Source of the DNA: Paraphysomonas bandaiensis | Lineage: Eukaryota; Protista; Chrysophyceae | Assembly: GCA_965644295.1 (NCBI GenBank) | Contig: CBFFRP010000395.1 | Location: 124,001-188,000, forward strand | DNA: 64,000 nt | Reading direction: 5' to 3' | Shown: positions 1 through 54,060 of the stretch, piece after piece | Layout: every line of letters begins with the position of its first letter | Position numbering within the stretch: the stretch's first letter is position 1 | Program-made: the position numbers and the translations under genes | Notes under the pieces: generated by a model | The model's input: only the letters and a program-made list of their open reading frames with translations | What the model was told of the DNA's origin: nothing | Database searches by the model: none

Positions 1-3000
1 CGGAGGAGGTGGTTCGCCAGGCGGTATCGGAAGAAGTGCGTGGACTCAATGCGCTTTTTAATTCGACTACAGGTCGCCATGAATTCACAAAACTGACCGA
101 ACAGCACGCTGAGCGTATCCTAGCCGCATTGGGATTGGCTGGCCATGCTCTTGCGGAGGAAACATCCAACTTAACAGGCTGTACATACGATGGACTAGAA
201 AAATGGTGGTGGGATAACCGAAAGTATTATTTCCCGTCGTCTATGCAGGAACTTAATCAGATGTCTAAAGAAAAGGTTGAGAACGAGATAGTTTCTTCAT
301 TGATGATGTTTGATGATGACTCTGATATGAGCGAACTTGATGATGGGGTTGATGCTGATGACACCCCATCTGTTCCTCTTCCTGTTCTTGCCCCTGGAAC
401 TACATCATCGGTTGCTCGACCAGGCGTATTCAAACGATTGTTCGGGTTTCGCCAGGCAGAGAAGCGGCGTATCGCTGATGTACGAGTACCCACTCCCCCT
501 CCTACTGTAGTATTAGAGAAAAAGTTAATGGATGATGCACCAAAGCAGCCGAAAGTAAAACCTGTTGCTGTTGCGGAATCGCATCCTCTTGATGCACACG
601 GATTAGAAGGCGAAATAATCGCCAGTGTGCAACATTTCAGCAAACAAGATGCGGAACTTACAGCCTACCAGAGACTGAGAAATGCATTACTTCAACGCAG
701 TAGGCTGTTCGACATTGGCACTTTTGGACAGTACCGTGCTGTCCTCTCTTTGAAGGGGTCTGTATCGTCAGTAGCTTTCGTTGAGAAAGATTCTCCGGGA
801 GTTTACTCAGGATTATCAATAATGCTAAATACAACACTGGATGACGCCAAGAAACGGCTCTTATCGAGACAGCGCGACGATAGTAATGAAAATTGGATGA
901 ATTATCGTACATGCTTGTCACGGGCATCATTTGAACGTGATTGGATGCGAAAAACCATTATTCTAATGTATGAATTATGTAGAGGAAAGAATATATATGC
1001 TCAGAATAAGGTGCGCCGTCTTCTTCCACCCGACTTGGTGTTGGAATTGTTCAACTATGGCGAAAATGTAGACAAAACTGCCGCTTGCAGCTTACTCTTG
1101 AATTTGTATGTAGACCATGACTTCGTATTCTCTGCCACTGCGATAACGTGTGAGCAAGGACAGGTACTTAGCTTTGGGGAGATTAATTATCAACCGAGGA
1201 TGGATGCAGGAATGTTATTCAATCAGATGACAAGGTATATAAACCCTTCTGATGAAATTACAGCACAGTCGTTAAGGAGGAAGCTTTGGGACTTTGTGAG
1301 ATCTCATCTTCAATCTCTTTCCCTATCTAAAGTATCAACGTCTCTCACTAAGTATAATGTTGGGTTTCTTCTACTACTTCGCAAATTATTGAGCATCGGG
1401 TTTTTTGACGAATCAAAGAAATTTTTGTCTGAATCAGAAAGTTTGGTTCGGGCTGCTCATGAAAATAAATTACTTGAGGAAGAGGGACGTAGCATATTCA
1501 CATGTGTTCGTGGACTTCATACGGAAAAGTTTGATTCGGAATACATTGAAAGAGTTTTAGTCAAAAAGATAATTGAGTGTATGGATGCACATGAAAATGA
1601 CATAGATACCATTAAACGTGGTGTACTTGGAATTCTTGGTTCTGATCGTGATTTAGGAAGAATATCTGAAGACGAGTACGAGCTGATCAATTATCGAGTT
1701 CAATCTAGTGGTAGTACTACGATAGGATCGGACAATATCGAATATGTTGATAAGTACTTTATGTCAGTGTTTGGAGACCCAAATCAAATTATGGCATTTC
1801 GTGAAGTTGTTTCAACTTTGTCACTTATTCACGATATGAAACAGGTGCATTTAGCGAAGAAAGTCATGGCAATGCTTGGCAATCCAGATAATTTCTTCTC
1901 CAAATCCCTTCTGTCATGTGATATTGACCCTAACTCATTACCTCAATCTAAGATTATTAGGTTTTCCAGCTCTGCAAAGTCTACAATATCCCATCTCTTT
2001 GAAGGCAGTATGAGCGAGAAAAAGCTCTACAGTCGTGCATTGCTTGCTGCATCTCTCCACCAGAGCAACGCGATTAAGCATTCGGTTTATGACCTACTGT
2101 ATCGTCGTCAGTCAGAAAGAATGGACTTAAAAAGAGTGCTAAATGAAATGGCTACTGTGATTTATCCTGGACAAGCTGCGCGAATACGCCTACTGAAAAC
2201 TTTTTGGGGCACAGTGTGCAAATATACGTGTGATTTGTTTAATGACACTGTGTCCCATTCATCATCTTACGACAATCACTTGAAAGAAGTTATTGAATTC
2301 TCATTTGATGCGATGAAAAGTTTATGCTACCACTCACTGAAGAAGAGAGACCAAGTCGGTACTATTTCTCCTCGTTTTCCGCAAGATAAATTGGAAGTTG
2401 AAACTCCTGTGGACGCTACCGGTGATGATGGTATTGAAATGACACGTGCAACTGTGAACGTTGAAGATGGTTCCAAGAAGAGCAACTATAATTTTGGGAA
2501 ACCGTTATCACTGCTCGGTATATCGGCAGATATTGGTAATCTATTGCCACGACCATCCCGACACGAATGTCATTTGATAGTAGGAGATACTGTCCTCCAC
2601 TGCTTGGAAGATGTTCGCAAGAAAGTAACAAGTCCCTTGCCTCATGAAAGCTCTCACACCGATTTGCTACCGTGGCAAGAACTATCATCGAATATCAAAT
2701 TTGTAGTGAACTCAACCCTTGACTTTTGCGCCGCTGTATGCACAGGTGCTATAAGTTTGATTCAGACTCATTTAGCTGAAGCCTCTGATATTGCCATTAT
2801 GTATATGTGGTCTTGTCCACCGGCGATGAAGATAGCCACATTGTTGTGCCGTTATAGTCGATTGGCAGACAAATTTCATGCGACAGATTTTCTTGAAATT
2901 GCGGCTTCAGAGATATTAGGTGTAACCCGAGGTAATGTTCCTCAACCTGATGTAGTTGGATTATTAGAGTCGATTGTAAGCAGTGGTGCCAGTGGGGATA

Positions 3001-6000
3001 GTCTCACCGATGTGTTATCTTGTGTCAAAGATATTACGCTCTCTAACGGTGCAATGCGACAGTATATTTTGTTAGAAATGCGGAAACCTCTTCGCAATGA
3101 AATTGCATTTCATGTGCAACTCTTACGTTTACTGTCGTCAATATGCTCGCTTCAACTGGGCATATATGATGATCTCCTGAAAACTAATATACCAACTGCA
3201 TTTTGTAATGGGATTTTATCGTCGTCATCTCCACTGCAGGTTAAGGCGAGTATAATAAACATATCTATGCATCTCTATTCCCATGGCGAAGTCCCCGTTC
3301 TGAATTATATCACAGATGACTTTAAGCGAATCATTGAGCTTTCTGATAGACCCGGTTTGATTCCTGACCAATTCGCTTACTGTGAAGCTTCTCTTGTGGA
3401 GTATATCAATGCCTGCATTGAATACCTGCTCCGCATTTCTTCGTTATGCGATGGGTACAATGAACTAGATGTGAAAAATCACAAAAACTACGTGTCCCAG
3501 TCGCTGCGGAGGTCAATGGTAGGCTCTATTTTAAGTCTTATAGTGGACTCTAAACCGGGTCTAGCTGGCCCAGAGAAATTGAAATCAATAGGGCCAGTTA
3601 ATCCACCAGAATATTTTAAATGTGTAACATACTTGTATGGAGTAATACGAGTACCAAACTTATATCGAGTTATTGATGGTATTGTGCGCAATCGTCGCTC
3701 AATGGAACATGTTCTGACTCTCTTTTCCGCCGCAAATGTCTGCCATATGAGAGTGCACAACATTCCCAAGGAAGTAAGTGAAGCGGATCAGCTACAAGGA
3801 CATCACCTGAAGAACGCCCTTGAGTATGCTACCAGATTAGGTATAGAACATGAAACCACCATAAGTAGAGAGGAATTTCTTCGGGTTGACGGAATCGATA
3901 TATTTGTGCGACGCGTTGGCCAAGAGTTGATGCCTACTGAACTGAGTCGTAAGAAGGTGTTATCCAGGAAACGTGAATTCAATATGAGCATGGACTATTT
4001 GCCTTATATTCCTCATGAAATTCTTGTGAAGACTCCATTGTACGAAATACTTTCCATGTACTTAAATGATGCATCGGATTTTCTTGATGGTGGTGGTATG
4101 CAGTTACTACATAATAGTGGCAGTATTAAAGAAACTCCTTCTTTGAAGCGTCTTTGTGACTTTCAGAAGTGGCTATATGGCGGTGGAAGATATATAATGA
4201 CTGTATGCAAATACTTGGAGCTGTATGCCACTAACGATGATGTTTCACGCTCCCTCCTACAGTTGATGTGTACTTTGCTGGATAATAGAATCGAATTTAT
4301 TCGGTCAAGCAAAATTCCGCTGAAGATAAAGATGATACTTGTCCAATCTGAGGTGAATAGACTTCAGCGACTCCAAGACACTATGGACGCTTTTGGAGCG
4401 TGTAATCTTATTTTATCCCTTGTGGGTAGGTCCAAATTCTCTTCGTTGGTGGAGCCGTTTGTTCAAGACATTGTTCCTCTTGGTCTTAAATTGGGCTTCT
4501 TTTTACTCGCTTCTGGAAATGACTCTGTTCAAGACTCCATAATGCAGAAGTACAAGGAAGCCAACACTTCTGGTGGGTCTGGGGGAAAAAGTAGATATTT
4601 TGTTGTTTCACTTCGAATATTATTGAGGAAAATATGCGACAAAATGGAGTCCTATTTAAAGCATCCTACTCACACCTTTCCTCTGTCCAACCTCAAGTTG
4701 TTGTGCAAAATATATGACTTCTGTGCTAGCCTTTGCAGTGGGCACAATGACAGCGCTAGAAACTTTCTTCGCGACCAAGATAAGGTTGGGGAATCAACAG
4801 ATTTAGTGTTCGATATATCGAAATCGGTAGATATGGTGTTACATTTATTGTGTAACCAGATGCGATATATTACATTCGATCAGTTTTATGAAAGGCTCGG
4901 TCCCTATGTATGGAAACATAACCCAGATGTGAAGCGTCGGTTTATTGCGTGGCATTGTAATATTGATTATGAACTTGTGTGTCAACTGATGTTAACTTTG
5001 ACGAAGGGATTCGGATCATTGACGGAGATAACGCAGGGCCCATGTCTCAAAAACCAACCGTCCGCCCTTTATTGTACCAGTCGTTGTATGGACCTTTTGG
5101 AATACGTTGGTGCTATGCAGCTGCGTGCCCAGTCAGTTAAGAAAGGGATTGTCGGGTCGCGTCCAACAGTATGGGATGCTAGGAACCCTTTACAGTTTTA
5201 CAAGCAGTACGAAAGGGAGCTATCTAAGTTGGGTAGATTTAATGACGACCCACAATCGCTTGAGATACGCGATGCTATTGAAAAGTGGTCAAGTCTGAAG
5301 AAGCGGTCGTCGAGGAAAGATGAATTCGCGCCGAAGTCGAGTAGTGATATTCTTGGAGTAGAAATCGATCTCTTATTCACAATGGCCCGTGAGTGTGAAA
5401 ACAGCTGTCTGAGGTTTTTACTCGCATTGCTTGAAGCGTCTTCTAGTCTAGTGTGCGAAACATTGATTGGGCAACTGGATGATGGAATATTATTGCAGAA
5501 TATGGAAAATCAGTACAAACTTTCGTTCGATAAGAGCGACAACTTTTCTAGTTACCGCAGTTCGTGTACTGTTCAGTACCTTACTCTTATATCCACTATA
5601 GCATCTGCCCAGCGAGAAGATCCTGAAGTTATATTGGATGACTTATTGCAAGGGTGGAAAACAGACAACGAGAAGGACGGCTACAATACTGAAAAGCTAG
5701 TTGCATCTGTTGAGATAACGTCTCCAGATGGATCTGTTCAGCGTGTATATTTCCCGATTCCGCCCTTTGTTACTAACTTTTGGAGGTACCCTGAAGTACA
5801 GAAGGCGAAAGAAGCATTGCTCTATGCTGTTAACAGAGACAGTGCGGAGGACAAGCTGGGCGACTTCTATGAGTTAATGCAAGGTCTGGTGCAGGTGATG
5901 AGGAGACAAGAAACACTGCGTTTACTTCTCACCCCGCCTGTGCACGCTCTGTTTGGAGGGAAGAATCCGATTGTTGAGATTTTCCCATTCTTGAAAGTGT

Positions 6001-7752
6001 TCAAGATGAAGCCACTATTTTTCGCCATCACATTGTTCTTCAGTATTTATTATGCCTACGATTCGTACCGAGAAAAATACCCCTGGATTCAGCCCCATGA
6101 GGTCCCTGAATTTAAGTGAGTTATTATGTGGCGTTACAACTCGTTAATTTTATCTACATCTGTAGAAAAATGTGGGACTGGCATTTGAAAGAGCTTGTTC
6201 TTGATATTTTGAAGTATGTACATATGGGTTTGGCGGCAGCATTATTTGTTCGACAGTTTCTAAATAGGTTTGTACTTTATGTGAGTAAGTTTCTGGTAAT
6301 ATATATGCAGTCCTGCTGCTGACACACTGGATCCTATTCCGCTTCCGTTTATGAATTCTGTTTTCTTAATACGATTTGTCAGCAAAATTCTGAGGTAGCT
6401 TTTTTATTTTGCTCTATTCTGACACCTTGATCAATTGGCTCTTGTTTAGCTTTTTCCGCAATGTGGTAGTTCTAGCTGTGAGTGTATGGTGGGATCTGGC
6501 ACTAGTAGGATTCAGGTTCCTCGAATTTCCGTTGTATATATTAGCTTTTCTAATTGTCCATGCAGCCTTCTGGGTTTTTTTGTCAGTCACTTCTGGTATG
6601 CTCCCGCTCTTATGGACCTCATACCCCAGATTCGGCTGATGTCATTTCTACTGGACGCAATCGCAAGAAACACGAGTCGTATATTTTACACTTTGTTGTT
6701 AGCCATTATACTATTGTACTTGTATTCCGTTATCACTATAGTTTTCTTCCCTAACCAGTATGGACTCGCGGGACATATGGCGTGCGGAGACATCATCTCC
6801 TGTTTCAAACTGCAAATAGACTACGGGCTTGTGAATCCCCCTGAATGGATTGGGGAGGGGTACATTGATCCATACGTTGGAAAGTTTTACGAAGTGACAA
6901 CGTATGGTTACGTCTTGAGTATTCTGGGTGGAACAGCATTTAACTTCACATACATAATTCTCATCAATCTCGTACTCCAAGCCATCATATCTGGCCTCAT
7001 TATTGATACTTTCGGTGAAATGAGAGCGGAGAATGAGGCAATTGAAGATGACATTAAAGAGCGATGTTTTATGTGTAGTATTGAGAGGTAGTACACCTGT
7101 ATGTGTTAATTCTTGTCAAGTAATGTCGCTTGTATCAGAGATGAATTTGAGCACGCAGACATACCATTCCATGAGCATGTGGCTGTAGAGCATAATATGT
7201 GGCATTACGTCTGGTTTTCTATCTACATAGAGTCTAAAGATCCACTCACTTACACTGGTCCCGAACAATATGTTTATGAAAATATGGTTGATAAAAATGT
7301 GGGTGTCATGTTGCACTTTCGGCTTATCTGTTGAATTCATGTTTAAACAGGGGTTTGTGCGCTTGGGTCCTATCAAGAAAAGCCTCTCTATACTACGCAA
7401 AGCTGGTAAGGTTAAAGAGGAATTTACACTCAAGGGTGTGCACGACTCGTTACAGAATATTACTACTTTGCAAACCCGTTTGCTATCAGCGACGAAGTCC
7501 TTATCTTCATCTAGATCGGCGGACTCGTCAATTGTGAAAGAGAGCGATAAACGTTTGCAGCAGGTGTCTACCTCTGTGCAACAAACCAAGTCGGATGTGC
7601 AGCAAATTATGGCGCGGTTGACAGAGCTCCGTGAAGATCTAGACAGGAAGATAGGAGATGTCACTTCTCAGATTAGTCGGAACGCTGAGCGCATTAGATC
7701 CGCTGATTCAATAGCGTCTCAATCTGATAGATCATCACCAAGAAGTACGTGA
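1..7752 (+). CDS. IP3 receptor/ryanodine receptor-like Ca2+ release channel, 5' end outside window, multi-exon at 3' end
   Basis: A 2036-aa open exon contains RIH-associated-like motifs (CSGHN..ARNFLRDQ, LTEITQGPCLKNQ, ASVEI...QRVYFPIP). Short exons then give TM helices, ILINLVLQAIISGLIIDTFGEMR, and the C-terminal CFMCSIER/DEFE...EHNMWHYVWF...DPLTYTGPEQYV signature. GT-AG introns lie near 6116-6165, 6268-6310, 6394-6449, 6515-6565, 7088-7138 and 7303-7350. Stop at 7750-7752. Confidence 0.9.
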
Positions 7753-8569
7753 TATTGCTATATTGTACTAGTTTCTTCTGTTGAAAGGATGCCTCTAATA
7801 ATTAATATTTCTTATCATTGTTTGTCGACACTGCTTCGCCTCGAGGTCACTCAGTGGAAGATATCTGAAATCAGATTATACTTCACTCTGATACTTCCGC
7901 ATCAAGAATGTTTTCGCTCTCGTTGAACGGTTAGAGAAATGCGAAGGTAAAATCGTGTGAACTAGATAGGAATTATTAAGCAGTTTTATTCAGCAAGGAG
8001 TTGTGACGAGAGATCTTTCACTTACAACCACATTAGCCAATTCACACAATCCTTCTTATAGCCTATCATTGGAAACGTGCTGTATAGTCATGATATATCG
8101 CTTCTACTTTCTTGCCTTTTATTCCTATTACATTATACTACTATCTGCTAACTTCATTATTGTATATTATGCAAACATCGACAGTGAAATACTGCATCAT
8201 CTCGAATTCTGAAGCAGTATATATGACAGCCCAAATTTTATATCTAAACGATAAATATTCACCTAATATACTGATTTTCAATTGCAAGACGAATTTTTAT
8301 CATGAAATCAAAATTTCACTGAATTTGATAATCTGAAAGAGCAAATTGTTTGTTGAAATTGCTATGTTCCTCTAAGATCTAAGATAGAGCTGTATTACTC
8401 GGTAAATACAATATGAAATACTGCAATACGTAGTCAAAATGCTGTAGTACTGTAGTAACCATGAAATGCGCAGGAAATATTAGCTGCAGAATAAGAGTTT
8501 ATGAGCTTACATCAGAACAGGAGCAGTGGATAACAAAGTTGCCGCAACCAACCTAACAACTCGCGCGAC

Positions 8570-9681
8570 ACTAAGCATAACAGGACTCTCATCTAGTTAC
8601 TATTGCATGCACCGACAAGTGCTCAACTATACAATAGGACTTAGCTACATGGGCATTCGACGAGTTGCGCGTTTAAGCCGGATCATACGCTCCTGCCCAA
8701 TCTACTTGTCCTGAAACAAACAACTTGCGGTCGGTGTCTTCGGCATATGTCTCCTGTATATGCGGCAGACCTTTAGGGCTCTCTTCAAGGAGGTGTTCAC
8801 AGCAGCAGGTAGTCTTGAGGGGAGAGTAGAGTAGCTCTAGCGCCGGGTCCTACCACGGTCACGAAGCGGTCTCACTGGTGCAGCTTTGCACGCTGACGCA
8901 TGAAACAGATGTCTACTAAAATCTATTACTAATTCAAGCTGACTCCAATGTCTTCCCTCCATTATGTGCACTCGTCCAGCACATGCATCCACCTTGCACT
9001 CTTCTCCTGAGTGACTTACGCTAGTAGGAAACCGTGCACCTTATCCGCTCGGATAAAAACCTACATAAGAAACAACATAAAAGCACTCACAAATGTACCT
9101 GACACACTGCTTGTAGAGAACAGTGCCAGAGATTTGATATAATCTCAATGACCTGGGTCAGGAGAAACCAAGAGTAGGCAGTAGACGTGTGAGAAGACAT
9201 GACAGGTCTAATTACATCATTGCCATTGCCATGCATCCATGAGGAAAGTTTGACGCATTACCTCGGTCATTGGCCACACAGATACCGAATAATGTGAACT
9301 CATACTCAGCATCAATCAGGAGACACTAATAAGTGTCACTTGTGTATAGACGTCTTTGGGCCCTGACGAATAAACAGGCAACCGGGAATGGGCCCACCTC
9401 AAGGGTAACCGGGGTATTGGGCTGCCTGCTGAAGTTTAGCATCCGGGATGTTAACCTTAAGAATTCAAAAAACCTGATGCCAGCAGATGTCAGGTATATC
9501 AACATTCTGCTTGCTCACTGCGTTTGCTTTGAGTGTATCACACAAGCCATTAGGCTACGAGTGGGCAGAACAGTATCTGCTGACTATATAATATGTGGCT
9601 CACGTTAGTTTTCCGAGAAATATCTCCGGTACTTATCCCCCAGAACACCACGAAAAGGTGTAAGTCCGACTTTGTTGAGGG
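8570..9681. mobile_element. Long, internally rearranged copy of the HDV-ribozyme retroposon family
   Basis: 8570-9320 matches 33945-34625 in reverse. About 9320-9535 is the element's 3' body in + sense. About 9538-9681 is the 5' ribozyme end in - sense. Confidence 0.7.
9596..9681 (-). ncRNA. HDV-like (ingi/L1Tc-type) self-cleaving ribozyme, most complete copy
   Basis: Minus strand reads CCCUCAAC AAAGUC GGACUUAC ACC UUUUCGU GGU GUUCUGGG GGAUAAGUA CCGGAGA UAUU UCUCGG AAAA CUAAC GUGAGCC. This gives P1 (with a 2x2 mismatch), P2, P3 ACC/GGU, a 7-nt L3 ending CGU, a P4 hairpin, J4/2 CUAA and P2', in HDV order. Confidence 0.7.
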
Positions 9682-9699
9682 GGCTACGTGTATGCATCC

Positions 9700-9975
9700 C
9701 TTGTCGGTAAGGAGTTTATCTATTGCTTCTTGAGAGGAACGACGAATAAAGGGATCAAATTCAGTGGAACTAGGTTTGATATACGCGTGTTCAGTGGTGC
9801 CGACTGGGCGGGTGACATACTTACGAGGCGCTCGACTACAGGTTGTATTGTATTCTTGTATGCTTTAGCGATATCATAATAGTCAAAGCTGCAAACTACT
9901 TTTGCAACATCTCGCTTGGCGTCCAAAAATAAGGCTGAGTATATACATCTATGCAAGAACTGGTGTGGCTACAAA
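9700..9975 (+). mobile_element. Degenerate Ty1/copia RT-RNase H fragment
   Basis: LRGTTNKGIKF...ADWAGDILTRRSTTGCIVF is followed by a disrupted S*SKLQTTFATS...AEY...QELVWL, the copia RNase H motif, with stops and frameshifts. Confidence 0.85.
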
Positions 9976-10430
9976 ATAACAACGTCATCAACACATATAA
10001 TAAAATATACACGATGAGCTTTGTGTATGGCATATAATATAGACAACGTTCTGATACACAAAAACCCAATGACTTAATAAAGCCATGTGTAGTGTTCCAC
10101 CGTGAATGTAGTGAGCACCTGAGACCATATAATGACCGATTTAGAAGTTATATTACACTCCAATTAATGATAACTAACCGGAATCCGAAAGATTTTCTCC
10201 TCTCCGGTGTGTGGGGGGGTGTTGGCCGAATTAGAACACCATTTTTCTTAGATAGCCAAAGTGCTCGATTTTTTATAAGCGTTCGAAACGTATTAAAATC
10301 AAATACTACTGGGTGAGAGAGCACGTATATCCAGATGATCCAGTCCACACAGCGACATTTTTGTGTGGTATTATCTCTGACAAGCATCTAGAAATGTTTA
10401 AAGGAGGTCATCAGAGATAAGGCGTACGAA

Positions 10431-10936
10431 TATTATATTGAAAGTCTTATTATTAGCAATAGGCGTTAAAAACCTGCACCAACTTAGTAGCTAGATGAAT
10501 GCTAGACAATCTAGTTAGACCTCTACCTGTAACTAATCAGTACACACTTTTTTTATCCTACTATTTAACTCTACGGAAGCTGCTTGTGCGTCGCCGCAAG
10601 CACCAAGGTGCGACCACTTCCGCTCTGAGTTCTTAAGGTGAACATCTCGGATGCTTGACTTCAGCAGGCAGCCCAATACCCCGGTTGCCCTTCAGGTGGG
10701 CCCTGTCCCGGATGCCCTTGAGGTGGGCCCATTCCCGGATGCCTGTTTATTCGTCAGGGCCCAAAGACGTCTACACAAGTGACACTTTTATTGGTGTCCC
10801 TTGTACCACACAAGCATTCGGCTATGCGTGGGCAGAAGAATATCTGCTGACTATGTTTGCAGCTCACGTTAGTTTCCCAGAGAGAATTTCTCCCCCAGAA
10901 CACCACGAAAAGGTGCGAGTCCGACTTTGTTGAGGG
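10431..10936 (-). mobile_element. Short non-autonomous retroposon with 5' HDV-like ribozyme, perfect 11-bp TSD
   Basis: AGGCGTACGAA occurs at 10420-10430 and 10937-10947. The minus strand begins CCCTCAAC and ends ...CCTATTGCTAATAATAAGACTTTCAATATAATA. Confidence 0.9.
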
Positions 10937-19069: not shown

Positions 19070-19624
19070 TAGTGATAGTGAGTGAATTAATTAATATGAT
19101 TGATTGTTATAAGGATAAATGTGTGTATAGGTAGAGTGTGATAGTAGAATAAAGGGATAGATATTTCATTGTATGAGGGAGTTATGATGGTATGATATGA
19201 GCTGAGTGGGATGTACCTGTATATATGTATCTATGCATGTATATATCTGTACGTATTTCTGTAGGTTGGCGATAACAGAATACAGAAGTATTTCTATGCA
19301 TACGTATGTATGTATGTATGTATGTACATGTATGTATGTATGTATGTATGTACATGTATCTATCTATGTATGTATGTACAGTACAGTATGTATCGTAGGA
19401 ATTGCAATAAGCAATGCGAAGTCGACTATAAAATTCACCTTTTTATATCCGAACAACTGAATAGATCCATAAAACTCAAGTTTTTTTGCATAAAACCTTG
19501 AAAAAGCCAAGTATTTGCTCCAAAGCTACGGTATATGTATTAGGTGTTATATGTGCTGTCTTTCTCTATATATGTACATACAGTACAGTCCATGTCATTC
19601 CTCTTAGCTAACACAACTAACACA

Positions 19625-25822: not shown

Positions 25823-25904
25823 GACTGTTTGTCCGAGTGGTTAAGGAGATGCACTCGAAATGCATTGGGAAATTCCCGCGCAGGTTCGAATCCTGCAGCA
25901 GTCG
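25823..25904 (+). tRNA. tRNA-Ser(CGA)
   Basis: 82-nt cloverleaf with long variable arm, anticodon arm ATGCA-CT-CGA-AA-TGCAT, GGTTCGAATCC T-arm and a downstream T-run terminator. Confidence 0.97.
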
Positions 25905-26057: not shown

Positions 26058-26139
26058 CGACTGCTGCAGGATTCGAACCTGCGCGGGAATTTCCCAATGG
26101 ATTTCTAGTCCATCTCCTTAACCACTCGGACAAACAGTC
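26058..26139 (-). tRNA. tRNA-Ser(AGA)
   Basis: Minus strand GACTGTTTGTCCGAGTGG...ATGGA-CT-AGA-AA-TCCAT...GCAGCAGTCG, followed by a T-run. Confidence 0.97.
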
Positions 26140-27698: not shown

Positions 27699-28165
27699 TC
27701 CTCAACAAGAAATCGTTCTCGTAGCTTATCGTGGTGTTCTGGGGGATATGTACCGGAGATATTTCTCCAGAAAACTAACTTGTGCAGAAAACATAGACAA
27801 CGGATAACGTCCTGCCCACTCATAGCCTAATGCTTGTGTCACTTATGTCATTTATGTCAACGTCTTTGGGCCTTGACAAATAAACAGGCATCCGGAACTG
27901 GGCCCAACTCAAAGGTAACCAGGATATTGGGCTGTCCTATGTAGTCAAGCATCTGAGCTGTTCACCTTAAGAACTCAAATATCCTTAAGTCAGCAGATGT
28001 CAGATATATTATCAACGTTCTGCTTTCTCGCTGCGTTTGCTTTGAGTAATAGAGCTAAAGAGGTGACGCACAAGCAGCTTTCGTAGCGTTAAATAGAGTA
28101 TAATATCAGAGTTAAGCACAGACTCTTAAACGCCTATTGCTGATAATAAGACATTTACTTATACT
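27699..28165 (+). mobile_element. Diverged copy of the HDV-ribozyme retroposon
   Basis: Runs from TCCTCAACAAG...GTGGTGTTCTGGGGGATATGTACCGGAGATATTTCTCC to CGCCTATTGCTGATAATAAG. Possible decayed TSD AATAGTAACT/AATAGAACT. Confidence 0.8.
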
Positions 28166-31089: not shown

Positions 31090-31171
31090 CGACTGCTGCA
31101 GGATTCGAACCTGCGCGGGAATTTCCCAATGGATTTCTAGTCCATCTCCTTAACCACTCGGACAAACAGTC
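31090..31171 (-). tRNA. tRNA-Ser(AGA), second copy
   Basis: Identical to 26058-26139, with shared flanks on both sides. Confidence 0.97.
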
Positions 31172-33205: not shown

Positions 33206-33655
33206 AGCTAGTGAATTCTGATTATTAGCAATAGGCGTGTAAGAGTCAGAACTAGTGTAACAAAACAATTTAACTAACTAGTGCTTAACTATGATATCTT
33301 ACTATTTGGCGCTACGAAAGCTGCTTGTGCGTCACCGCAAGCACCAACGAGCAACTACTTTCGCTCTCTGTCCTTAAGGTAAACTCGCCCGGATGCTTGA
33401 CTTCATCAGGCAGCCCATTACCCCGGATGCCCTTAAGGTGGGCTCATTCCCGGATGCCTCTTTATTCGTCAAGGTCCAAAGACGTCTACACAAGTGACAC
33501 TTATATAAGTGTCCCTTGAATCACACAAGAGTTTGGCTATGAGTGGGCAGAACAAAATCTGTTGACTATATATGCGGCTCACGTTAGTTTTCCGGAGAAA
33601 TATCTCTGGTCGCCCAGAACTCCACGAAAAGGTGCGAGTCCGACTTTGTTGAGGG
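33206..33655 (-). mobile_element. Copy of the HDV-ribozyme retroposon
   Basis: Minus strand starts CCCTCAAC at 33655. GGCTTGA flanks both ends (33199-33205 and 33656-33662). Confidence 0.85.
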
Positions 33656-33944
33656 GGCTTGACACTGCTAACTATGTTAGAGTTTCAGGTCAGGGGAGGT
33701 GCCATGTGCGCGTTTTTCGCCTGCAGTCGTATATGAAGCCGTAGGATAAGCTGTCTCTTCTGTTGGTAGGTGTCAGTGACTAGTGTTGGTGAATATTACG
33801 GAATCATGGATTTGACGTTGTATATATAGTTTCCTTTTTGTCTATATATGATGATGAAAACTTAGATAATATAAATACCATTATATTTTTGAGATATGTA
33901 ACGAGTAGTATAGTATAGGACACGTTGTATATATAGCTAATTGC

Positions 33945-34625
33945 GTTTCCCTTGACTGATTGATGCAGGATATGAGTTAACATTATTTGGTATTTCTGTA
34001 TGAACAATGACTGAGGTAATGCGTCAAACTTTCCTCACAAAAGCATGGCAATATATGTGATTACATCTGTTTTATCTTACCATCCGTCTGCTCCCTAGTC
34101 TTGGATCTTCCTGACTCAGGCCATTGAGATTAAAACAAGACTTTGACACTTTTCTCCAACAAGCAGTGTCAGGTATATATGTGTGCGTTTAGTAGTAGGT
34201 TTTCATAAGCGGAGAAGGTGCACGGTTTTCTATTAGCATAATATTTGCTCGGGAGAATAGTGCAAGATGGATGCATGTACTGGACCACGAGAGTACACAT
34301 ATATTTAGGGAAGACATTATTGGAATCATCAGCTTTAATTTGTAACTGGTTTTGGAAGACGTATGTTTTATACTTTGGTGTGCAAAATTGCACCTGTAAA
34401 ACCCCGTCGTTACCGTGAGAGGACCCGGCTACTCTACCCCCCTCCAGACTACTTGCTGCTGCAAACACCAACCTAAACGTCTGTCGTATATACAGGAGAC
34501 ATAGGACACGGACTGCAAGCTGTTTGTGTTAGGACAAGTAGATTCGGCTTAAACTCGCAACTCATCGTATGCCACAACGTAGCCAACTAAACCGTGTTGT
34601 ATAGCTTAGCACTTGACGGTACACA
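33945..34625 (-). mobile_element. Internal segment of the long retroposon form (duplicated at 35481-36161)
   Basis: Reverse-complement similarity to 8570-9320, for example AAGCAGTGTCAGGTA, ATATACAGGAGACATA and GGACAAGTAGATT. Confidence 0.75.
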
Positions 34626-34664
34626 TATTACAAACAACAATAGTATAACTATACAAGGAAGTCA

Positions 34665-35191
34665 TGTAGTAGTGAATGTTTCATTATTAGCAATATAGTA
34701 GAGGATGTCATATTATTAACAATAGGTGATTAAAAGTCAGAACTAATTTAGCATTTCTATTTAGTGTTTCACTATGATAATATTATACTACTTATTGCTA
34801 CGAAAGCTGCTTGTGCGTCAACGCAAGCAACAACGTGCAATCACTTTTGCTCTATCACTCAAAGCAAACGCAGTAAGAAAGCAGAATGTTGATATACCTG
34901 ACATATGCTGATGACTTAAGAATTTTTGAGTCCTTAAAAGGTGAACAGCAGCCCGGATGCTTGACTTGAGCAAGAGCCCATTACCCCGGATGCCTGTTTA
35001 TTCGTCAAGGTCCAAAGACGTCTACACAAGTGACACTTATATAAGTGTCCCTTGAATCACACAAGAGTTTGGCTATGAGTGGGCAGAACAAAATCTGTTG
35101 ACTATATATGCGGCTCACGTTAGTTTTCCGGAGAAATATCTCTGGTCGCCCAGAACTCCACGAAAAGGTGCGAGTCCGACTTTGTTGAGGG
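34665..35191 (-). mobile_element. Chimeric retroposon copy at the duplication junction
   Basis: The left part matches the 36200-36712 copy and the right part matches the 33206-33655 copy. Confidence 0.8.
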
Positions 35192-36199
35192 GGCTTGACA
35201 CTGCTAACTATGTTAGAGTTTCAGGTCAGGGGAGGTGCCATGTGCGCGTTTTTCGCCTGCAGTCGTATATGAAGCCGTAGGATAAGCTGTCTCTTCTGTT
35301 GGTAGGTGTCAGTGACTAGTGTTGGTGAATATTACGGAATCATGGATTTGACGTTGTATATATAGTTTCCTTTTTGTCTATATATGATGATGAAAACTTA
35401 GATAATATAAATACCATTATATTTTTGAGATATGTAACGAGTAGTATAGTATAGGACACGTTGTATATATAGCTAATTGCGTTTCCCTTGACTGATTGAT
35501 GCAGGATATGAGTTAACATTATTTGGTATTTCTGTATGAACAATGACTGAGGTAATGCGTCAAACTTTCCTCACAAAAGCATGGCAATATATGTGATTAC
35601 ATCTGTTTTATCTTACCATCCGTCTGCTCCCTAGTCTTGGATCTTCCTGACTCAGGCCATTGAGATTAAAACAAGACTTTGACACTTTTCTCCAACAAGC
35701 AGTGTCAGGTATATATGTGTGCGTTTAGTAGTAGGTTTTCATAAGCGGAGAAGGTGCACGGTTTTCTATTAGCATAATATTTGCTCGGGAGAATAGTGCA
35801 AGATGGATGCATGTACTGGACCACGAGAGTACACATATATTTAGGGAAGACATTATTGGAATCATCAGCTTTAATTTGTAACTGGTTTTGGAAGACGTAT
35901 GTTTTATACTTTGGTGTGCAAAATTGCACCTGTAAAACCCCGTCGTTACCGTGAGAGGACCCGGCTACTCTACCCCCCTCCAGACTACTTGCTGCTGCAA
36001 ACACCAACCTAAACGTCTGTCGTATATACAGGAGACATAGGACACGGACTGCAAGCTGTTTGTGTTAGGACAAGTAGATTCGGCTTAAACTCGCAACTCA
36101 TCGTATGCCACAACGTAGCCAACTAAACCGTGTTGTATAGCTTAGCACTTGACGGTACACATATTACAAACAACAATAGTATAACTATACAAGGAAGTC

Positions 36200-41654: not shown

Positions 41655-42135
41655 GATCTAATAATATGAAATCTATAGATATAATCTATGAAGATATACT
41701 CTAATTAATGGATATTAATATAAATGTATAGAGTTTGTTTTTCTATTGAATTGAATGAATGTAATGGAGAGTTTATTGGAACATAGAGAATGAATGATAT
41801 GTGGGGTATATATATGTGTAGATGGTGTGAGAGTATGTTGGAAGGAAATGAATGACCTGCTTGCTATACATACATACATACATACATAGCGATATCCACA
41901 ATACAGCTAGAGTATACATACCTATCTATATAGGCATATAAAACCTGCATACATACAATATATATGTACCTGCATACATACATACATACATACATACATG
42001 CATACATACATACATACTGTACTACGTATATATAAACACTGCTATACATCACATATACAGGTAATAAAAACCTAATTTTCATGCAAAAAATCTGATTTTT
42101 CAGTTCCAAACTATGGAAACAAGAAAAAAAGGAAT

Positions 42136-42208
42136 TGCTCTAGGATGGGCTCGAACCATCGACCCTTGGCTCATAAGACCAATGCTCTAACCACTGAGCT
42201 ACAAGAGC
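42136..42208 (-). tRNA. tRNA-Ile(TAT), intronless
   Basis: Minus strand GCTCTTGTAGCTCAGTGGTTAGAGCATTGGT-CT-TAT-GA-GCCAAGGGTCGATGGTTCGAGCCCATCCTAGAGCA, with a T-run downstream. Confidence 0.95.
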
Positions 42209-43329: not shown

Positions 43330-43759
43330 CCCTCAACAAAGTCGGACTCGCACCTTGGTGTTCTGGGGGATAAGTACCGGATATATTTCTCCGGAAAACT
43401 AACGTGAGCCGTATATATAGTCAGCAGATTTTGTTCTGCCCACTCATAGCCTAATGCTTGAGTGTGTGGCACTAGGTAGACGTCTTTGTGCCTTGACAAA
43501 GAAACAGGCATCCGGGAATGCGCCCACCTCAAGGGCATCCGGGGCATCGGGCTGCCTACTTAAGTCAAGCATATTAGCTAGTTTACTTTAAGAACATAGT
43601 GCAAAAGTGGTTGTACCTTGGTGCTTGCAGTGACGCACAAGCAGCTTTTGTAGCGCCAAATAGTACGGTATCAGAGTTAAGCACTAGTTGGTTCACTTGT
43701 TTTGTTACTTTAGTTCTGACTCTGACACCCCTATTGCTAATAATCAGACATTCACTGCT
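43330..43759 (+). mobile_element. Copy of the HDV-ribozyme retroposon with decayed 12-bp TSD
   Basis: Starts CCCTCAAC at 43330. Flanks are ACCAGCCCATTT (43318-43329) and ACCAGTCTATTT (43760-43771). Confidence 0.88.
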
Positions 43760-52939: not shown

Positions 52940-53035
52940 CTATGTTTGCGGCTAACGTTATTTTCCAGAAGAAATATCTCCAGTATTTATCCCCCAGAAT
53001 ACCACGAAAAGGTGCAAGCCCGACTTTATTGAGGG
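52940..53035 (-). mobile_element. Ribozyme-only 5' fragment of the retroposon (a 3'-end fragment lies near 53090-53135)
   Basis: Minus strand CCCTCAATAAAGTCGGGCTTGCACCTTTTCGTGGTATTCTGGGGGATAAATAC... Confidence 0.8.
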
Positions 53036-53614: not shown

Positions 53615-54060
53615 CCCTCAACAAAGTCGGACTCGCACCATGGTGTTCTGGGTGATAAGTACCGGAGAGATTCTCTCTGGGAAACTGACGTGAGCCGCAA
53701 ACATAGTCTGCCCACTCATAGCCGAATGCTTGTGTGGTACAAGGAACACCAATATGTGTCACTTGTGTAGACGTCTTTGGGTCCTGACAAATAAACAGGA
53801 ATTCGAGACAGGGCCCACCTGAAGGGTAACCGGGGCATTGGGCTGCCTGCTGAAGTCACCTTAAGAGCTCAGAGCGGAAGTGGTCGCACCTTGGTGCTTG
53901 CGGCGACGCGCAAGCAGCTTCCGTAGCGTTAAATAGTAAGATAAAAAAGTGTGTACTGATTAGTTACAGGTAGAGGTCTAACTAGTTTGTCTAGCATTCA
54001 TCTAGCTACTAAGATGATACAGGTTTTTAACGCCTATTGCTAGTAATAAGACTTTCAATA
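53615..54060 (+). mobile_element. Copy of the HDV-ribozyme retroposon with 11-bp TSD
   Basis: TACTTCCGATA occurs at 53603-53613 and 54061-54071. Starts CCCTCAAC; closest to the 10431-10936 copy. Confidence 0.9.

Follow-up and report, generated by a model that had tools for sequence, protein, structure and literature searches.

A predicted HDV-like ribozyme at the 5' end of abundant SINE-like retroposons in Paraphysomonas bandaiensis

The window analysed here, a stretch of 64,000 nt from the protist Paraphysomonas bandaiensis (assembly GCA_965644295.1, contig CBFFRP010000395.1, positions 124,001-188,000 of the forward strand), carries on its minus strand at 9597-9681 the head of a dispersed retroposon resembling a short interspersed nuclear element (SINE). 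This head is probably a ribozyme of the hepatitis delta virus (HDV) type, with junction motifs like those of L1Tc/Pr77 and an atypical, mismatched first helix (P1), its activity being predicted from the sequence. The strategy is already known from R2, L1Tc/NARTc and SIDER, while the host lineage, the very high copy number, a head not found on the partner long interspersed nuclear elements (LINEs) and a conserved defect of P1 are new. As the preliminary description of this DNA had supposed, no earlier account from this lineage was found in the literature searched.

The helices P1, P2, P3 and P4, the loop L3 and the junction J4/2 had been listed in HDV order on the minus strand, and every one of these motifs was read from the sequence (Table 1). 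From 9681 the strand runs CCCTCAAC (9681-9674), AAAGTC, GGACTTAC (9667-9660), ACC (9659-9657), TTTTCGT (9656-9650), GGT (9649-9647), GTTCTGGG (9646-9639), GG and ATAAGTA, followed by the hairpin CCGGAGA-TATT-TCTCGG (9629-9613), AAAA-CTAA-C (9612-9604) and GTGAGCC (9603-9597). The unit proposed earlier, 9596-9681, stands as 9597-9681, with base 9596 outside, and measures 85 nt versus 86 nt in the family consensus (L012:1501-1586, within the reference young copy of the 1.2-kb family, L012:1501-2714).

The order P1-P2-P3-L3-P3'-P1'-(P1.1)-P4-J4/2-P2' is that of the HDV-type nested double pseudoknot, and P1' stands directly after P3', the arrangement which fixes the cleavage site in HDV-like ribozymes (PMC3774820). 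Loop 3 has the form U-N4-G-N, the U and the G being positions 1 and 6 of UUUUCGU. The C-U-A-A of J4/2 at 9608-9605 would provide a candidate catalytic C, an extruded base and two A's, as in the antigenomic HDV ribozyme, where C76 is catalytic, U77 is extruded and two A's form an A-minor contact (PMC3386971). Each helix is energetically favourable by itself, the consensus P4 hairpin reaching -13.1 kcal/mol, and an equally good HDV topology anchored at base 1 was obtained in only 6 of 20,000 dinucleotide shuffles of the consensus.

The evidence that places this fold at the exact start of an element comes from the assembly to which the window belongs (62.6 Mb, 669 contigs). A search with window positions 9500-9700 as the query returned 2,404 first-look candidates, and a covariance model of the 86-nt head (R1) returned ~6,800, of which 150 were scored; all 150 matched over the full length at 101-120 bits. 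The 5' ends were read in 89 copies, namely 29 fetched loci and 60 R1 matches chosen across the whole score range. Similarity to the other copies begins at window position 9682/9681 (query base 19-20), and all 89 begin CCCTCAAC at the same base after unrelated, AT-rich flanks, which sharpens the earlier claim of a dispersed repeat with the motif at its 5' end. Of 22 complete 1.2-kb copies, 20 have a perfect target-site duplication (TSD) of 11-18 bp that adjoins base 1 with no extra bases. The predicted cleavage site and the TSD-defined start of the element are thus identical to the base. Of the original proposal, a self-cleaving ribozyme defining the 5' end of a retroposon, the exact start, the HDV order, the U...G of loop 3 and CUAA are upheld, the cutting itself being a prediction.

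Precise 5' ends and conservation would be explained equally well by a start site with a downstream promoter. The conserved ~86 nt would then be an internal promoter, another start-defining element or a signal for LINE proteins, the RNA would start at base 1, and the fold would be a non-cutting relic or a coincidence. Base +1 is C in all copies and the base before it is A in 39, T in 25, G in 15 and C in 10; a C at +1, after any base, is unusual for a polymerase start and better suits a processing site. The rarity of the base-1-anchored topology in shuffles and the correctly placed U...G and C-U-A-A likewise speak against a promoter without cleavage. In L1Tc, the same 77 nt serve as promoter and ribozyme both (PMC3383444, PMC4748587), which lends the promoter some credit, as do the weaknesses of the fold treated below, and on the whole this promoter reading, the main alternative, appears a rather unlikely explanation of the head.

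The elements bearing the head are non-coding. Copies of the 1.2-kb family are 97-99.7% identical, hold no open reading frame above 93 aa and end in ...TCAGATTTTCAAT(A) without poly(A). Only ~175 candidates for this 3' end were found genome-wide, and the depth over the first ~390 nt, taken from two DNA runs, is several-fold that over the remainder of the element; the head is therefore common to a more abundant short family of ~510 bp. The head tops two non-coding families with different bodies, of ~510 bp and ~1.2 kb. A polymerase III SINE was considered and rejected, as Rfam and tRNA searches found no tRNA, 7SL or 5S likeness on the head and runs of four T's occur inside the element. Non-coding content, variable TSDs and a tail common to a resident LINE identify the element as a SINE-like, non-autonomous retroposon of the type without long terminal repeats (non-LTR).

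Two features of the element's body may be recorded beside these. Downstream of the head, L012:1690-1770 (family positions ~190-270) contains two copies of a ~27-nt unit (GGCATCCGGGA..GGGCCCACC), and the presence of one or two units explains the 214- and 241-bp length classes and many skips of 54-55 in the run contigs. In another copy (L009:2688-2700), the tail ends TTTTCAATTCAAT with the terminal TCAAT doubled, which hints at slippage of reverse transcriptase on the tail at priming.

Both families end TAATAAT(C/A)AGA(C/T)TTTCAATA and hold the stem-loop GGT(C/T)GC...GCACAAGC. The same tail and stem-loop stand just after the stop codon of LINEs that encode an apurinic/apyrimidinic (AP) endonuclease and a reverse transcriptase (L045, L047). 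Because of this shared 3' tail, the elements are regarded as SINE-like passengers of these LINEs, whose proteins they would use. The 5' parts of three such LINE types (L045/L048, L046/L109 and, for its upstream region only, L047) are without the head. Since the LINE partners lack it in these parts, the head is not a general LINE recognition signal, one of the roles that the promoter alternative allowed. A head 6 kb upstream of the LINE in L109 was considered as a possible LINE head and proved to belong to a separate 1.2-kb element. Tandem monomers of ~165 bp form the start of the L048-type LINE, which lies at L048:4353 (monomers at L048:4353-4720, other copies on C32, C44 and C207); in some loci the first 398 bp, about two units, repeat tandemly upstream, and these 5' units are reminiscent of the promoter monomers of mouse L1.

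Variation within the head was followed in 80 distinct head sequences, in an alignment fitted to a model holding P2, P3 and P4. Over these sequences 88.6% of cells pair, and 96% do so in P2. The frequent changes are CpG transitions, including CG to TA in P2 of the window copy and changes at the CCGG sites in P4; the P2 difference between window copy and family was tried as covariation and rejected, being CpG decay on both strands. The most diverged head has nearest relatives at only 78%, no old subfamilies are seen, and the differences in the 60 extra copies are all either scattered singletons or CpG transitions. The copies all descend from a single master lineage whose head hardly varies, and because of this lineage and CpG decay there is no usable covariation in P1, P2 or P3. 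Double-sided changes were found in five pairs versus 1.8 expected in shuffles (1 of 500 shuffles), each of them a single decaying copy, and CpG decay confounds the count.

Variant shares were taken from contigs of two DNA runs at 85% likeness, with variants listed from a share of at least 10%, and are indicative only. Those listed within the head are changes in the P4 loop, two C-to-U changes in P4 that keep a G-U pair, a 1-nt insertion in P4 and a 1-nt deletion in the G-run. Among the listed variants, those with shares of 25-83%, together with several indels, begin right after base 86. This onset just past the 3' end of P2 is a further point against a promoter as the reason for conservation. 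A pattern that fixed loop 3, J1/4 and J4/2 and left the helices free found no relatives in JGI metagenome contigs.

Several results weigh against an efficiently cleaving HDV-like ribozyme, the foremost of which lies in P1. The conserved UC/CU mismatch in an 8-nt P1, already noticed in the window copy, is borne out across the family: the central positions 4-40 and 5-39 are unpaired in 80 and 79, respectively, of the 80 distinct copies, and the head does not reach the ~6-7 continuous P1 base pairs expected of an HDV-like ribozyme. Mismatches in P1 are uncommon in HDV-like ribozymes, and a U-U and a C-C mismatch there have each been invoked to explain why cleavage in vitro is lost unless Mg is raised (PMC3774820); two P1 mispairings are a severe deficiency according to the authors of L1TcRz (PMC3383444). 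The conserved double mismatch is thus a real argument against efficient cleavage. P1.1 is limited to two G-U pairs, 96% of cells pairing as wobbles. Slipped and bulged forms of P1 (CCCUC/GGGGG) reach -6.1 and -5.1 kcal/mol versus -3.8 for the canonical helix; the slipped P1 dominates the predicted ensemble and would take both G's needed for P1.1. The double mismatch, the weak P1.1 and the literature on such defects all favour the promoter alternative.

The remaining points concern detection, variation, partners and RNA. The nested fold energy is ordinary (z = -0.97), and the covariation described above is confined to singletons in decaying copies within an alignment fitted to P2, P3 and P4. 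At gathering thresholds, Rfam reported no ribozyme family over the whole window, and no Rfam HDV-type family matched 9300-10000 or the intact consensus at E<=10, these models being family-specific and without the pseudoknot; the missing Rfam match is again consistent with a promoter. In searches with filters off, covering five LINE loci, the head model had no match on L043-L048. A loose HDV descriptor, when unanchored, matches many unrelated places in the window, so the fold alone is not evidence and an independent anchor is needed. Most of the false descriptor matches stem from (GTAT)n microsatellites at ~19280-19330 and ~41980-42050. Finally, the element or part of it occurs in twenty sequencing runs, marine metatranscriptomes among them, in the form of contigs, which cannot show RNA starts. 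Coverage of the element is nearly perfect in contigs from RNA libraries of the poly(A) and cDNA type, of which some end at base 1-2 and others continue upstream. Contigs that cross the 5' boundary mean that cutting, if any, is incomplete, or that DNA was present in the libraries; taken together, these ends are compatible with cutting and with its absence.

The energies of P1 also bring in a self-cleaving RNA of non-canonical architecture, either with a slipped or bulged P1 (CCCUC/GGGGG, a CU bulge, AAC/GUU) and without P1.1, or of another ribozyme class that cuts at its own 5' edge. Such an architecture would agree with the slipped and bulged helices that dominate the predicted ensemble and with a mismatch kept in essentially every copy of a family that has evidently been successful. 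The slipped form, however, breaks the rule that P1' directly follows P3' (PMC3774820), the signature nucleotides of L3 and J4/2 fit HDV specifically, and neither hatchet nor another Rfam ribozyme family matched, which together make this architecture improbable. Chance resemblance, in which the head is simply a structured, functionless 5' end of a repeat, would accord with the ordinary fold energy and with the many unanchored descriptor matches. It is very improbable in view of the anchored shuffle test, of a head that hardly changes across thousands of copies and is common to two families whose bodies differ, and of the junction motifs common with L1Tc.

With the HDV-like ribozyme as the favoured reading, the following cycle can be proposed. 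The element carries no upstream promoter of its own and would probably be transcribed within longer host transcripts. Its first 86 nt could fold as an HDV-like double pseudoknot (P1, P2, P3/L3, P1.1, P4 and J4/2 with the catalytic C) and would cleave the RNA directly 5' of the first C, leaving a precise 5' end and the whole ribozyme in the RNA. The 3' tail, which in this view derives from the 3' untranslated region of the resident LINEs, may recruit the endonuclease and reverse transcriptase of the LINE, and target-primed reverse transcription would then copy the RNA to its very first base and create the TSDs of 11-18 bp.

A bolder version, that an active L1Tc-type HDV-like ribozyme was taken over, its original LINE left behind, as the 5' module of SINEs in a stramenopile-like protist and tolerates two central mismatches in P1, is possible though doubtful. 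If it were true, a self-cutting RNA would take the place of the polymerase III promoter of ordinary SINEs, the Pr77-type ribozyme would be ancient and predate kinetoplastids or would have spread horizontally, and the accepted sequence rules for HDV-like P1 stems would be widened. Should the head cut, the genome would hold thousands of HDV-like ribozymes, many of which could cleave read-through host transcripts as proposed for Leishmania SIDER; the SINE would join a ribozyme head to a LINE tail and lack any polymerase III component, and the family would be a natural test of the mispairing tolerated by an HDV-like P1. Should it not cut, the case would be a caution that HDV-like topology in the correct position is insufficient to call a ribozyme.

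The closest parallel is L1Tc (L1TcRz/Pr77; PMC3185411, PMC3383444, PMC4035085), in which, as here, an HDV-like fold takes up the opening ~77-86 nt both of a non-LTR retroposon and of the non-autonomous elements derived from it; the Pr77 hallmark occurs in the trypanosomatid L1Tc, NARTc, ingi/RIME and SIDER elements. The L1Tc sequence used for comparison comprises positions 1-15 and 27-77, rebuilt from published primers. In both systems the predicted cut precedes base +1, which is a C in a C-rich P1 (CCCUGG in L1Tc, CCCUCAAC here). Both begin CCC and have a weak P1.1, and within the rebuilt positions 27-77 they share GGUG, AGUAC before P4 and GAA-N-CUAA after it. L1Tc has a clean 6-bp P1 and here there are eight positions with two central mismatches; L1Tc ends in a poly(A) tract and the present elements in a specific tail; and the host is a kinetoplastid in the one case and a colourless, silica-using marine protist in the other. 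The LINEs of the L1Tc/ingi group carry the head, whereas the tail-sharing LINEs here are without it. The preliminary description was sound on the L1Tc motifs, from the CCC start to CUAA, and they make a Pr77-type signature a candidate reading of the head.

Looser parallels exist in other retroelements. In R2 and the R2-derived SIDE (PMC3774820, PMC3414825), the element RNA is released from a co-transcript by an HDV-like ribozyme, as may happen here by analogy, and the non-autonomous SIDE elements have retained both a ribozyme at the head and the 3' end that reverse transcriptase recognises. R2, however, inserts specifically into 28S rDNA and its P1 often draws on 28S bases, in contrast to the dispersed insertion of the present family, and SIDE is an internal deletion of R2 with head and tail from one parent, whereas the head here was not found on the partner LINEs. 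SINEs with hammerheads in Schistosoma, twister variants in non-LTR elements of S. mansoni (PMC8501958) and retrozymes (PMC4918200) are likewise non-autonomous retroelements with a small self-cleaving motif, differing in that they belong to other ribozyme classes and that retrozymes have a circular-RNA life cycle.

The antigenomic HDV ribozyme, its sequence taken from general knowledge, agrees in P3 ACC/GGU, the loop-3 U1 and G6, J4/2 C-U-A-A and helix order. It differs in the loop-3 C's that form P1.1, which are U's here, in the cleavage-site G-U wobble, which the present head does not have, and in the P1 mismatches found here; RF00094 gave no match.

The host had been proposed to lie outside the kinetoplastids, and its genes agree. 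The genome holds at least seven silicon-transporter loci (C348, C406, C398, C150, C298, C149, C405), several with two tandem half-domains in frame, and no gene for a light-harvesting protein was found anywhere in the assembly. What emerges is a colourless marine protist that uses silica and whose genome is not kinetoplastid-like, which is consistent with Paraphysomonas.

Table 1. Features of the window, with positions counted from its first base
Feature	Position	Strand	Basis or remark
Old copy of the ~1.2-kb non-coding retroposon	8538..9681	-	BLAST against L012:1501-2714, 92-93% identity
Segment equal to family positions 154-392 (214 bp), inverted here only	9322..9535	+	Comparison with 29 other loci
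Candidate HDV-like ribozyme head, predicted cut directly 5' of base 9681	9597..9681	-	R1 score 107.7 bits; family start here
P1 5' strand CCCUCAAC	9674..9681	-	Pairs with 9639-9646: 3 bp + U-U/C-C + 3 bp
P2 5' strand GGACUUAC (family GGACUCGC), bulged A	9660..9667	-	Pairs with 9597-9603
P3 ACC/GGU and loop 3 UUUUCGU	9647..9659	-	U...G spacing equals the HDV U23/G28 signature (PMC3386971)
P1 3' strand GUUCUGGG, then GG (candidate P1.1 with loop-3 U's, G-U only)	9637..9646	-	Sequence
P4 hairpin, one C lost versus family; flanks AGUA and AAAA (consensus GAAA)	9613..9629	-	Sequence
J4/2 AAAA-CUAA-C; candidate catalytic C at 9608	9604..9612	-	C-U-A-A as in the antigenomic HDV junction
P2 3' strand GUGAGCC	9597..9603	-	Sequence
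Member of the short (~510-bp) family: same head with part of P4 deleted, 11-bp TSD TTCGTACGCCT, LINE-type tail	10436..10936	-	
Decayed head copy	27699..27786	+	R1 85.2 bits; nearest relatives 78%
Decayed head copy	33576..33655	-	Second copy at 35112-35191 through a 1,536-bp tandem duplication
Decayed head copy, loop 3 deleted	43330..43410	+	
Decayed head copy, C8U and G36A (P1 pair C-G to U-A)	52950..53035	-	
Decayed head copy	53615..53696	+	

The window copy itself had been called active or recently active, a claim that does not hold. The copy at 8538-9681 is old and rearranged, has lost its last ~38 nt, its TSD and one C of P4, and is probably dead. In 28 of the 29 other loci the segment of family positions 154-392 is oppositely oriented and stands directly after the first 150 bases; in the remaining one, L028, it is split by an insert. 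Each end of the inverted segment at 9322-9535 has the short motif AGTCAGCAGAT...TTCTGC nearby.

The 1,536-bp tandem duplication covers 33370-36159 and has heads on the minus strand running from 33655 to 33370 and from 35191 to 34851. It also has body-like segments on the plus strand at 33942-34623 and 35478-36159, with 74% identity to family positions 376-1106. In these units the head and the body-like segment point apart, unlike those of the 1.2-kb family.

Among the neighbouring genes, an open frame of 2,036 aa on the plus strand (9-6119) runs off the window start and encodes a RyR/IP3R-homology-associated domain; it is followed at 6486-7091 (+) by an exon with an ion-transport domain, the two belonging to an IP3/ryanodine-receptor-like channel gene whose best database relatives are unnamed and 63-65% identical. 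Four tRNA genes are located at 25823-25904 (+), 26058-26139 (-), 31090-31171 (-) and 42136-42208 (-), of which three are near-identical 82-nt genes with a long arm, two of these forming a head-to-head pair separated by 150 bp. There are retroposon heads no more than a few kb from the tRNA genes.

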